A DNA stretch of 64,000 nucleotides from Bugula neritina (lineage: Eukaryota > Animalia > Bryozoa). Position 1 is the stretch's first letter; every line of letters starts with the position of its first letter. The translations under genes were made by a program, and so were the position numbers. The DNA is taken from contig OZ037765.1 in the NCBI GenBank assembly GCA_964035545.1, positions 32,983,504 through 33,047,503 on the forward strand, given 5' to 3'. This document shows, piece by piece, positions 11,276-55,103 of this stretch. The notes under the pieces were generated by a model. It did not search any database, was not told where the DNA came from, and saw nothing but the letters and a program-made list of their open reading frames with translations.

Positions 11276-14200
11276 ATGCGTTCAGGTATGTAGTATGTCA
11301 GTTTGTGATATTTTCAATCCTCTCAGATATATCCGTATGCTCTTTCTCTTGGCTTATGAAATCATCAAATGACTTATTAATGTAGAAAATACAACACTTG
11401 TCACAATCACTAACTTTAAACAATATGTTTAACATCTTTCAGTTGTAAATGTACACCTTTAGACTATTCTAAATTATGTATTATTAGATAATGTAAAAAG
11501 TTTATATACAATCAACTCTAATAATTTGTGCAGTTATACACAGGACAGTTAAGGGCATCCTTACTAAAAATATTATAAATTTAGCTCACAATGTAGTCTA
11601 GATTCTTGCTATAATTTTGTTCTGTGGGTGGCATGCGTGTTGCCTGCCTGTGTATGTTTAGCCTGATATTAGACTATGACCGATAAACAGCAAGCTCAAT
11701 TAGGGCTGCATTATAAATCAACATTCCATTGTGGCTACTAAGTAAATGAATTACACACCAAGCTATTCACTAGCTTGTAGGCTAGCAGGTCTGTAATTAT
11801 TAATGGACAAGCCAATATCTTCTCATCTCTACGCGTTCACTGAAGCGTGAGGTGATGCGCAGTGCTTGTTAGTAAAGAAAAATTATCTCAATTTCAGGGT
11901 ATAAATCACTAATTTATAGAAAATCTATAAAAGCTATTAGAAACATTACAAAAACCGCGCTGCAGAAATATCTCAGGATTCCAACAGTGTTTTCTTTTTT
12001 CAGATATTATGTTTTCCTCCTGAGATATTTTACTGGGACTGACATGATGTTTTTTCAGCTAAAAATAGGAGAAAATGGGTAGTTTTTTGTCTGTAGCTCA
12101 GCCAAAAAACGGAAAATTAAAAATTCCAAAAAACCGCGCTGAGGAAGAAAGCTATCTACAACATAATTTTTAAATTTTGATTCTAGCACAATTAGGTAAG
12201 ATTCTATTTTACTGGGACTGATTTCTTATATGATAACAATGCATCATCAGCATAGCAGCTAGAACTAAAAGGTTGCCCTTAACTATCCTGTGTACTGTGA
12301 GAAAAATTTGACTAAGAATAGTGTAGCCAGTAGCCACATGTTTGTATCATAATCATTATAAATCATATAGTTATATAGATAATTTAAATAGTCATCACTG
12401 TACTTAAAAACATTTACAATGGTTGCTTGTTGAAAATGCCAGTCATGGGTACAGTGCTGACTGTTTTATTCTTTTGATGTCTATTTAACAAGCAATTATT
12501 AGTGGATTTGATTTTATCTTCAAATTATTTTAATCAATCACTGCCATTTGTCAAACAGGAAGTGACTATCTTTTTCAAAAACAGAATAATAATTGATCAG
12601 CTAAAACATCAAGTAAAGGTAACTCCAAGTTTACATAAACTGTGTAAATATTACAACACTGACCATTATGAGTTTATCACAGACTGGATTAAAGTATACT
12701 TTGTATTAATGACTTTTAATACATACTCTATATATCAGGCAATGAACTCTTTTAACTTATAATTGTAAGAAGTAGTTAATAACTATTGCAGCAATCAACA
12801 GGGTTTGACAATTATTCAGAGATCGCTAAAATGTTTATATGTGAAGTAGAATACACTGTGAACCATCTATATCTATTTAACCTGCATTAACTGGCATGTG
12901 ATAAAGTTGTGGTAGAAAGAAAGGGTAGCCACATATTTATAATATTATTATAAGAATCAGTTACAGTATCTGTATAGTAATAATACTATCTCTGTGTTGT
13001 TACAGAGAGTTTCAGAATCTGGTTCAGACATTCTGGACAGGATCCTGTAGACTTGGAAGATGTACGCAAAGCTACAACCAAATCATATACTTTGAGTGAA
13101 GTGAAGACTCAAGTTGGGAGTTGTCAACTCACTCACCTCAAGTTAGAGAAGACAATTCCTAAGAATATAGGAGATATTGCTTCTCATGCTGTTTGTTTGG
13201 TACTTCGTAATATAACTCACAAAGGGAGTCTGAATAAGTGAGTATTTAGTTGAGTATATCTGAGTCAACTCCTACAATTCTATGATATGATTTATATATG
13301 AATTTGTTGAGGAGTTTATAGTAGACATATATTATGTGTCACTATACTGTTACACTATACAGCACTACTGTAATCTACATGCTGTTTCTTTATACTACAG
13401 TCTGGGTCAGCTGACTCAGTTAGAAATACTAGACATAAGAGGGACTACTCTCAACACAGTACCAAATATTGTGTCATCACTCACATCACTTAAACAGTTG
13501 GATATGAATTACTGTGGTATATCCTGTCTACCTGAGAGGTTTGTGTGTCACACATTTATCTCGAATGACCATGAGTGGAATTATTAGGTCTCGTGAAGCA
13601 TTCATGAGTGATAAAAACATTTTTAATTTTTACGCAAAAATCCAGTGTATTTGCCATATTTATAGGTGCTATTAAGCCATCACTTTATCTGGGATATAAC
13701 TTTGACAAATAATCAATAATATTATATTTGTAAAATATGAGTGGTGGTCACATGCATATCTCTGTGCTGCACAAAATACATGTGATTTAGCATCACAAAA
13801 CAGGGATGTATATAGAATTTTGAAACTTAGCTATTACTATGGAGTGATAGTGTAGCGGTTGTTTGTATATTAAAGTGCTGATGGTACTTTATTGGAGCCG
13901 TAAGTCTCTACTGATGTCATAAGGCAATGTGAAAACTATAATAGTAATGTATAGAACAACATGTTTGTAAAAATATGCAAAGGTGTAGTATAATAAGTCA
14001 CCAAGTTATTGTCAAACAATAAAGATTTCATATTCTATTAAAATGCAGAGATATTAGTAATTATTAGGAATAACTATATCACCTGATTGGCCCTACTAGT
14101 TCTATAAAACGGCTGCACTGGTCATGGCTCTAGCACTTGACCTACCGTGACTAGGCCAAGTCTAGAACAAACACATGTGCAGCCTACAAGGTTTTTTTAT

Positions 14201-52900: not shown

Positions 52901-55103
52901 TATATATATATATATATATATATATATATATATATATATATGTGTGTGTGTGTATATATATATATATATATATATATATATATATATATATATATATATA
53001 TATATATATATATGTGTGTGTATATATATATATATATATATATATATATATATATATATATATATATATATATATATATATATATATATATATATATATA
53101 TATATATATATATATATATATATAGCCATTGAGTAATATATCTTTGAACAGTGCTTCCTTTATATTAAACAGTCTCAGTCAGCTGACTCAGTTAGAGAAA
53201 CTAGACATAAGACTGAACACTCTCAACACAGTACCAGATGTTGTGTCATCACTCACATCACTTAAACAGTTGGACATTATTCAATGTGGTGTATCCAGTC
53301 TACCTGAGAGGTTTGTGTGTCACATGTTTCTTACTACAACTCAACATCTTTATTACTTTTCTTTAAATTATATTTATACACAGTTTCTAACATGCTATAA
53401 ACTAGATTTCCTTGATCCACTACTATTTTGTACTCAGTCTGATTTTCTAGTGTATAATACAATACTGTTAAGCAAAGGTGCAAGATATCAACTAAAGAGC
53501 CACCCTCACATGGCCAAGAGTAAAATTAAGAATTAATTTCCCATAATCTATACCAGGACAGACTTCACTTCTACAGTATTAAAATAGCCATATATATATA
53601 TATATATATATATATATATATATATATATATATATATATATATATATATATATATATATATATATATATATATATATATATATATATATATATATATATA
53701 TATATATATATATATATATATATATATATATATATATATATATTATAGCTTTTATTTAAGCACTCCTTTACGGTTGCACGCCCAAAAAATTTTGCTTTAT
53801 AATGAATTTTCCGCTCACTGGTGCTGAATTGATTTGAGATTTCTTGTCGACTTCAAATGAGGTTTCTGGTTTTGAAGCCTGTATCTCCCCAAACATATAC
53901 TACTTATAGCTAACTTCCATTTAGTTCTATTCCTAGCTGCTGCAACAAACAGCTTAATAGCAGGGCTGGCTCTAAAGTTTAAAATTTAACTTTTTGAATG
54001 CATAATTAAAACTGGGGCCACATAAAAAGTCCTTCTACGAAAACCACCAAGGAAATCTTTGCACAAGCGGCAAATTGGGCCAATTTGTGAAGTTTATATT
54101 TAGACAGTATGTTGATATATATGATGTTCATATCTGACTGCTTACTGATCTAATTAGATAGTAATATTTAGTTAGTATAACGAGTTTTTATTTAGGCTTT
54201 CCTTGTTGAGAAGTGGGAGCTAGGGTCTTAAGAATAAATTAATTAGAAAGGCCAGTGGTAACTAAAATTGGTCACTTTATATTATAGTATATGTGAGGCA
54301 GCACATTTTCAATTCAAACGCTTTATGTAGCCTCAGTATGAGACTAAACCTCGAAGTCTTAACTTAGGGAGCTGTGAAATAATAAGCAAAAACTGCATTG
54401 TTCAATATTTAATAGGGCTGAGCTCACAATTCTAAATCTCAGATGACCAGGTAGTGTTGTCAATAAAGGTTGCTTTATCTGCTAAACGTAGTACCAAATA
54501 ATGTTATCCAATATCTGCAGTTATGGCTGGTAAAAGTATTTATTTAATATATCATTTGTTAGTCTGAAAATTATTTTGTAGTTGAAATGTACGTAAGATT
54601 AAAAGAAGAAAATTTTATTATTGTTTTGCATATAAATGTACGTGTAAAATAAAAATTAAATTATTTGTTTGCACTACTCGTATTTCTAGCAAAGAACTCA
54701 TTCAAATTCTCTTGAAACTGTTTGTGCACAAATATCAACTAAATGTTGGTAGCTTGCTATACATTGCTTATCATTATATAGCCAAAGATGTGGCACACGC
54801 AGTAAGACTGCTATAAACAATTGAAGCAAAAGGAAATATGTAAGCAAAGCATAAATTCTAAAATAGTTGTACCGTGCATATTTGATTGGTTCACAGTAAA
54901 TACATCAGGGTCATAAAGAGGCCTCTCAATACAAACTAACCATACCTTTTATACTTGTACAGTCTCCTTATAGCACTGACTCAGTTAGAGAAACTAAACA
55001 TGGGATGGAATCCCTTCAACACAGTACCAGATGTTGTGTCGTCACTCACATCACTCAAACAGTTGAATATGAGCAACTGTGGAATATCCAGTCTACCTGG
55101 GAG
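46974..55103 (+). CDS. Gene B LRR cassette-exon array: five 138-nt and one 141-nt phase 2-2 exons
   Basis: Exons start at 46974, 48409, 51165, 52340, 53173 and 54963. Same consensus and donor flank as the A array. Confidence 0.92.
49241..49656. mobile_element. Candidate MITE
   Basis: 13-bp TIR TAGGGCCRCACAA. No clear TSD. Confidence 0.5.
52740..53124. repeat. (TA)n microsatellite with TG/CA interruptions
   Basis: Direct reading. Confidence 0.95.
53590..53743. repeat. (TA)n microsatellite
   Basis: Direct reading. Confidence 0.95.

Follow-up and report, generated by a model that had tools for sequence, protein, structure and literature searches.

Predicted LRR-Roc-COR-caspase genes with variable two-repeat cassette exons in the bryozoan Bugula neritina

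Two tandem genes in the window

We analyzed a stretch of 64,000 nt from Bugula neritina (assembly GCA_964035545.1, contig OZ037765.1, positions 32,983,504 to 33,047,503 of the forward strand), hereafter the window. Two paralogous genes, A (11276-34050) and B (46127 to about 62700), lie in tandem within it and are predicted to encode an animal ROCO protein fused to a caspase. In each gene, six cassette exons, each specifying two leucine-rich repeats (LRRs), precede a single 2-kb exon that carries the last LRRs, a Roc GTPase domain and a COR domain. Gene A continues with seven exons for a linker and a complete caspase. The two genes are members of a large bryozoan family, one intact and the other with a premature stop. 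Both genes and all exons described below are on the + strand.

The gene A model was built from conserved AG/GT sites and was checked using the intron phases and the three-base codons at the junctions. It comprises 16 exons totaling 4134 nt, or 1377 codons, from the ATG at 11276 to the TAG at 34050, with consistent phases and no internal stop. The putative first coding exon (11276-11285) consists of ATG plus 7 nt followed by the donor GTATGT. The ATG and this strong donor are conserved between A and B, and the exon joins exon 2 without a stop. Exon 2 (13006-13237; 232 nt, phase 1 in and phase 2 out) encodes the N-terminal cap, was placed by its splice sites and frame, and is 86% identical to the B copy. 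RNA contigs of relatives show the equivalent exon 2 end spliced to a cassette.

Exon 9 (27230-29277), which encodes the last LRRs, Roc and COR, is open over its 2048 nt. It was identified from Pfam and structure matches, and its acceptor was confirmed by an RNA contig containing the joint 26195>27230. The remaining exons were placed by frame. Splice sites and frame define the linker exon 10 (29442-29519), whose junction also occurs in the B. neritina gene model P0015; exon 11 (30484-30626) encodes an acidic linker and is 91% identical to B. The caspase large subunit starts in exon 12 (31082-31255) and continues in exon 13 (31814-32045), which carries the catalytic His (SHG) and Cys (ACRN). Based on splice sites and frame, exon 14 (32572-32700) encodes the inter-subunit linker, exon 15 (33327-33436) the small subunit with its GSPFI motif, and exon 16 (33901-34050) the caspase C-terminus and the TAG stop.

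Within exon 9, the last-LRR region of gene A has extra codons at 27269-27325 compared with B. An RNA contig (run X1) has 9 other letters in place of these 57 nt and so points to an expressed relative without the insertion.

The cassette arrays

A repeat finder applied to the whole window returned 12 copies of the two-LRR cassette exon and none beyond. The repeat family has a unit of about 165 nt and an identity of 78-90%, with six copies at 13.4-26.2 kb and six at 47.0-55.1 kb. A profile built from the cassette peptides and run in all six frames detected no thirteenth cassette-like exon in the window. In the alignment, the cassettes form a block with sharp edges, preceded by ACAG and followed by GTTTGT. 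Eleven of the 12 are exactly 138 nt long, with AG/GT borders and phase 2 introns on both sides. Each is open solely in the frame that begins at its second base, so that its first base finishes a codon and its last two begin another.

The gene A cassettes A1 (13401-13538), A2 (16437-16574), A3 (17105-17242), A4 (23274-23411) and A5 (23783-23920) are supported by the repeat finder, the borders, the profile and the frame. A6 (26058-26195) has the same support, and a 96% identical cassette exists in another gene of the cluster. In gene B, the repeat finder, the borders and a cassette tree define B1 (46974-47111), the most divergent, with six departures from the common framework, as well as B2 (48409-48546), B3 (51165-51302), B4 (52340-52477) and B5 (53173-53310). 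B6 is the exception: there is no AG before 54966, and the usable acceptor ACAG ends at 54962. The revised exon, 54963-55103, has one extra codon at its start and is 141 nt long, which is still a multiple of 3, with phase 2-2. A first-pass annotation of the window had proposed 12 cassettes of phase 2-2 with lengths that are multiples of 3, and this stands with the corrected start of B6. It had also called the framework almost invariant. In numbers, this means that 22 of the 45 columns are at least 90% conserved among the 12 cassettes and that each cassette carries one to six departures.

Domain content and gene family

The Pfam COR-A model matched residues 331-396 of gene A exon 9, directly after Roc, at 3e-11 (43.9 bits versus a cut-off of 35.3). 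Pfam Roc was matched at 1e-4 (23 bits, under the curated cut-off of 27), and there was also a match to Pfam LRR. Searches of solved structures by sequence using phmmer matched Roc to Chlorobium Roco (3e-8) and LRRK2 (1e-4), and the P-loop, switch II and G4-type THLD motifs of Roc are readable in the exon. NACHT and NB-ARC were not found in this central exon, where Pfam gives Roc/COR. The ROCO identity proposed in the first-pass annotation was thus borne out by Pfam and by the structure matches. Its assignment to an animal agrees with the protein matches, which indicate a bryozoan.

The same annotation overlooked the fused caspase, which changes the probable role of the protein. Matches to Pfam Peptidase_C14 (PF00656) were above the cut-off in both exon 12 (2.8e-8) and exon 13 (1.2e-10). 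The readable motifs are SHG, ACRN in A or ACRS in B, and GSPFI in the small subunit; the residue after the caspase Arg is accordingly Asn or Ser, not the usual Gly. The phase-consistent gene A model suggests that the caspase and Roc-COR share one transcript, and both also occur together in the B. neritina models P0007 and P0015 and in models from Watersipora.

The best named protein matches were B. neritina models called 'hypothetical protein EB796_*', with 79-82% identity. These public models are fragmentary and skip cassettes. Roc-COR exons occur on six contigs of the genome; at least 64 are full-length, and the first-look candidates number 135. The subfamily to which A and B belong has eight Roc-COR exons with 81-83% protein identity, all in one 0.9-Mb stretch. 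The cassette arrays of neighboring genes range from 3 to 15 cassettes.

Variable positions of the cassettes

Further analyses of the cassettes used 59-63 distinct sequences from the window and the neighboring arrays. Amino-acid entropy exceeded 1.6 bits exclusively at codons 9, 11, 13, 14, 16, 34, 36, 37 and 39. In the LxxLxLxxNxL register, these codons are positions 3, 5, 7, 8 and 10 of the first LRR and positions 5, 7, 8 and 10 of the second. The set of contact residues is unique in 60 of 63 cassettes.

The first-pass annotation listed the four residues after LDI (RGTT, RGSH, GWNT, GMNH, GFNP and GWNA in A; DNIP, GWNP, HSNP, HSNP, RLNT and GWNP in B) and the two residues before Cys in both genes. 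Both lists were read correctly. Its statement that all four residues after LDI vary needs amending in that the third is the conserved Asn of the LRR, present in 56 of 59 cassettes. The entropy analysis added variable sites in repeat 1 (positions 3 and 5) and in repeat 2 (positions 5 and 10).

In alignments, the cassette profile shares its register with the 23-residue LRRs of SHOC2 (4e-19) and with variable lymphocyte receptors (VLRs). By analogy with SHOC2 and established LRR geometry, the variable x positions would form the face of the beta-strand and its exit, on the concave side of the solenoid. The earlier placement of these sites on canonical concave-face positions agrees with this register. 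In algal ROCO proteins, variable sites have likewise been assigned to the concave side (PMC3341825). A single-cassette fold, predicted using a 12-row alignment, gave a helix with a predicted local distance difference test (pLDDT) score of 53, which is meaningless for a two-repeat fragment. The concave-face placement therefore rests on the SHOC2 register and LRR geometry.

Selection on the variable positions

For tests of selection, the site class was fixed beforehand as positions 3, 5, 7, 8 and 10 of both repeats, and nonsynonymous and synonymous changes (pN and pS as proportions, dN and dS as rates) were counted according to Nei and Gojobori. Among all cassette pairs, dN/dS was 1.93 for the variable class and 0.55 for the rest. 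In 31 independent pairs matched on scaffold and intron flanks, the variable class had a pN of 0.318 and a pS of 0.167 (Fisher p = 7e-5); the corresponding values for the rest of the cassette were 0.042 and 0.078. When 31 independent pairs were matched by their intron flanks alone, the variable class had a pN of 0.329 and a pS of 0.185, for a ratio of 1.78 (p = 1e-4), and the ratio for the rest was 0.58. With the latter pairing, codons 2, 9, 11, 13, 14, 16, 34, 36, 37 and 39 exceeded the global silent rate after Bonferroni correction, and codons 14 and 37 did so 5.5-fold.

We consider it likely that genes A and B encode germline-encoded, exon-shuffled and diversifying intracellular receptors that combine a sensor, a switch and a protease, that is, an LRR arm, Roc-COR and a caspase, in one chain. 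Several observations weigh against this reading. Gene B is broken as assembled: it has an in-frame TAG inside Roc (57307-57309), just after switch II, where A has CGG. Framework departures are equally frequent in the A and B cassettes (18 and 19 in total), and the lesion is therefore best viewed as recent, allelic or an assembly error. No RNA contig could be assigned with certainty to gene A or B. A pairwise-incompatibility permutation test gave no signal of recombination inside cassettes (p = 0.4-0.8); 36-44% of the cassette site pairs are incompatible, at any distance.

The other observations of this kind concern selection itself, and they also favor a different reading, in which the genes carry an ordinary tandem-duplicated LRR array whose variable sites drift neutrally while gene conversion homogenizes the scaffold, with no selection for diversity. 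Specifically, the 12 cassettes of the window have a variable-class ratio of about 1.2 at rates near saturation, which is inseparable from neutral evolution. Silent divergence of the scaffold, at 0.11-0.18, is below that of the intron flanks and of the adjacent Roc-COR exon (0.31), as homogenization predicts. Such low values, whether due to homogenization or to constraint on silent sites, inflate any ratio taken against scaffold silent sites, so only the within-class ratio is safe. Finally, the variable codons have roughly double the frequency of silent changes (p = 7.5e-4), and part of this excess could come from a local bias in mutation or conversion. A neutral array nevertheless appears improbable to us: the within-class pN/pS is 1.8-1.9 with either pairing (p about 1e-4), cassette pairs that are nearly identical over about 160 bases of scaffold and flank (0-2 differences) have 1-13 changes among the 30 bases of the variable codons, and, as noted, nearly every cassette has its own contact set. 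The diversifying selection proposed at first pass is seen across the cluster and not in the window's own 12 cassettes.

Duplication and exchange of exons

A tree of 55 cassettes with their flanks contained no A-B pair at any position. Instead, B2 grouped with B5 and B3 with B4 within gene B, and A1, A4 and A6 grouped with cassettes of other genes. This confirms the earlier remark that the cassettes do not correspond positionally between A and B. Consistently, the inter-cassette introns of the two genes have nothing in common beyond about 100 nt of flank. These comparisons support a history in which duplication and exchange of whole exons would have shaped the arrays.

Another reading places the assembly or conversion of cassettes at the DNA level in somatic cells, as in lamprey VLRs. 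The cassettes, with their hypervariable concave residues, do resemble VLR modules, and the idea was raised for brown algae by Zambounis et al. (PMC3341825). Nevertheless, the cassettes are all located within genes, share one orientation and have a working AG/GT pair, and there are no orphans in the window. No intron-less cassette junction was found in the genome assembly, and the joined forms seen in RNA-type data are explained by splicing. We accordingly give somatic assembly hardly any credence. A spliced cassette junction had no match in the JGI metagenome contigs scanned.

Evidence from RNA

Part of the gene A Roc exon was found in 13 probable RNA runs from four studies, none of which is recorded as RNA. 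Contigs from four probable RNA runs were placed on 23200-29199; these were 100-500 nt long, and many came from paralogues or a diverged genotype. Contigs of the Roc-COR exon were 93-96% alike to gene A, with identical differences across all studies, and no paralogue in the assembly is closer than 89%. Based on these two observations, the Roc-COR contigs probably derive from a different genotype of the same gene.

Spliced cassette-to-cassette and cassette-to-Roc joints were present in RNA-type runs of all four studies. As the genome has no intron-less cassette junction, we regard these joints as products of splicing. In several cassette-to-cassette joints, the variable parts were replaced, which identifies them as coming from relatives. 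Both skip-like joints (A4-like>A6-like) and backward joints (A6-like>A5-like) were seen, and these also carried replaced letters. The backward joints, from an A6-like end to an A5-like start, occurred in runs X2 and X5 (23781-26199). Transcripts of paralogues with another cassette order are the most likely source of the skip-like and backward joints; the backward joints may also represent circular RNA.

These data bear on the possibility that diversity arises at the RNA level, with combinatorial inclusion and skipping of cassettes yielding up to 64 patterns per gene and many receptor isoforms. Any subset of the symmetric cassettes would remain in frame. In all 63 cassettes, the donor carries T at +3 (GTTTGT or a near variant, such as GTTTTG in A5), and a conserved GT-rich flank follows it in the 12 cassettes of the window. 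The nine other donors of gene A have a purine (A or G) at +3. Such atypical, weak donors are common in skipped exons. Splice variants are also annotated in brown-algal ROCO genes with one-LRR exons (PMC11378527). Even so, none of the skip joints was attributable to gene A, the odd joints are most simply explained as paralogue transcripts, and the common donor may just reflect a duplication unit that includes the intron flank. Combinatorial splicing thus seems unlikely as the source of diversity. In an extended form, which we think somewhat less likely still, the T+3 donor and conserved flank would make each cassette optional, and the at least 64 genes would each produce many sensor arms of varying length and content, perhaps differing by cell or zooid, and so supply this colonial lophotrochozoan with an anticipatory, splice-generated LRR repertoire mounted on a caspase. 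The 64 inclusion patterns given in the first-pass annotation are arithmetic only, as the RNA contigs neither show nor exclude skipping.

Proposed mode of action

In the sensor-switch-protease model that we prefer, the predicted sensor arm is built from exons that are symmetric in phase 2 and encode two LRRs each, all cut at the same point of the solenoid. With this arrangement, duplication, loss and exchange in the germline would alter the length and content of the arm while keeping the frame. Exchange of whole exons would act both within and between paralogues. The scaffold, silent sites included, stays alike, and the concave positions 3, 5, 7, 8 and 10 would be driven apart by diversifying selection. 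Binding of a ligand to the concave face would then alter the GTPase or oligomeric state of Roc-COR, bringing the caspase domains together and activating them, with cell death or substrate cleavage as the outcome. The immune or cell-death role, the binding of a ligand and the order of signaling are what we infer.

The receptors might not sense pathogens: colony self/non-self recognition, control of bacterial symbionts or programmed zooid regression could drive the diversity. Bryozoans are colonial, and one paper (PMC8195603) links allo-incompatibility in colonial animals to cell death. Moreover, a fused caspase would suit any death-triggering switch, and two of the RNA-type runs with transcripts of the family are labeled 'symbiont metagenome'. 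Inspection of the modeled exons by eye revealed no apparent signal peptide or membrane segment, so that contact with the surface of another colony is not obvious. We regard a role of this kind as possible, if doubtful.

Comparison with known systems

Brown algae (Ectocarpus and Saccharina) have ROCO genes with exon-shuffled, positively selected LRR exons of 72 nt, phase 2 and one LRR each, with splice variants (PMC3341825, Zambounis et al. 2012; PMC11378527, Teng et al. 2024), confirming the precedent that the first-pass annotation had cited. The bryozoan genes share with these the order LRR-Roc-COR, LRR exons of equal length and phase 2, duplication and exchange of exons, positively selected concave sites and clustered families. 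They differ in their animal host and in that their exon is 138 nt long with two LRRs, as compared to the algal 72 nt with one. They also have a caspase after COR; the word caspase occurs 0 times in the algal paper. Splice variants are annotated in the algae, whereas the short RNA contigs of the bryozoan include cross-mapping ones from paralogues. The likeness is most likely convergent, with the bryozoan genes working alike without being members of the algal family.

Closer in architecture are two proteins of another cheilostome bryozoan, Watersipora subatra, XP_067947674.1 and XP_067948342.1 ('MFHAS1 homolog' / 'uncharacterized protein'). These are LRR-Roc-COR-caspase proteins of 1413-1419 residues, compared with the 1377 codons of gene A. 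They are automatic annotations, and their Roc-COR identity to the B. neritina genes is about 30%. MFHAS1/MASL1, LRRK1/2 and prokaryotic Roco (Chlorobium tepidum, PDB 3dpu/6hlu) also have N-terminal LRRs followed by Roc and COR, with matches from 3e-8 to 1e-3. Their output is a kinase or none, as opposed to a caspase, and the B. neritina proteins have in addition a hypervariable, cassette-built LRR arm. Literature searches on ROCO or Roc-COR with caspase, and on bryozoans or Bugula in combination with these, yielded no account of the animal family.

NLR inflammasomes and plant NLRs combine an LRR sensor, a nucleotide-driven switch and a protease or cell-death output, and they form large, clustered, fast-evolving families. 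The same sensor-switch-protease logic in a large clustered family is found here. Unlike NLRs, the B. neritina genes encode Roc-COR instead of a STAND NTPase (NACHT/NB-ARC), and the caspase is in the same chain, without recruitment through CARD/PYD adaptors. Lamprey VLRs consist of modular LRR units with variable concave residues, and insect Dscam1 has arrays of alternative exons. In contrast to VLRs, there are no signs of somatic assembly, and the cassettes all follow gene order as exons that can be spliced. In contrast to Dscam1, transcripts contain several cassettes one after the other, which are hence not mutually exclusive.

Immune-type receptors of animals are poorly known beyond vertebrates, insects and a few models, and those of bryozoans hardly at all. 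If our preferred reading is correct, these genes would represent a third type of intracellular receptor acting as a death switch, in addition to STAND-type NLRs and Toll-like receptors, and a striking convergence with brown algae. They provide concrete candidates for bryozoan allorecognition, symbiont control and pathogen defense. They would also be of use to ROCO research as a natural system with a simple protease read-out driven by Roc-COR, the module that is mutated in LRRK2 Parkinson's disease. The window itself adds a complete, phase-checked model of 16 exons, a sister copy interrupted by one premature stop codon, and a cassette set that is older and more diverged.

The sister gene and the surroundings of the two genes

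BLAST comparison of the A and B regions gave collinear blocks both before and after the cassette arrays. Gene B is collinear with A throughout, and its exons are open apart from the TAG described above. Its putative first coding exon (46127-46136) has the ATG and donor conserved with A, and exon 2 (46451-46682), the N-terminal cap, was placed by similarity to A and by its splice sites. The Roc-COR exon (56799-58806, 3' end approximate), located by BLAST against A and by Pfam, is 87% identical to that of A; between the two, dS is 0.31 and dN/dS is 0.30. The linker and caspase exons (59314-62696) correspond to homology blocks at 59314-59464, 60640-60819, 60905-61135, 61708-61787, 62253-62354 and 62552-62696, all open in frame. 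Another member of the eight-gene subfamily (G000:C1:33101759-33103804) has a TAA stop inside its Roc-COR exon, indicating that broken copies are not rare.

The surroundings of both genes contain transposable elements. Upstream of gene A, at 2342-8846, lies a Ty3/gypsy-type long terminal repeat retrotransposon with 191-nt terminal repeats that are 99% identical. It contains open reading frames (ORFs) of 306 and 1583 residues, the latter encoding protease, reverse transcriptase, RNase H and integrase, and has a GC content of 50-57% as compared to about 32% around it. A second gypsy-type element, at 36850-41780, has 172-nt repeats that are 99% identical and a pol ORF of 1323 residues. It was apparently inserted in an older reverse-transcriptase ORF, the halves of which are at 36493-36984 and 41771-42166. 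Decayed retroelement pieces (DUF1759 gag-like, RVT_1) at 19839-22801 explain the 6-kb length of the A3-A4 intron.

Other repeats were found in the introns. In the A5-A6 intron, 24200-26000 had a very high contig depth in each of the four RNA-type runs, reaching about 30,000 in X5, with the flanking intron empty, and is probably a transcribed multi-copy repeat. Two regions of gene A, 11611-12134 in intron 1 and 29662-30185 in the intron after exon 10, contain blocks of 162 and 195 nt that are 76-79% identical and equally spaced, probably two copies of one dispersed repeat. Minisatellites occur in introns at 26484-27113, 10723-11052 and 33427-33636, with units of 19, 27 and 12-14 nt. Finally, long (TA)n/(TATG)n tracts adjoin A5, A6 and B5 at 23938-24230, 25960-26035 and 52637-53130.

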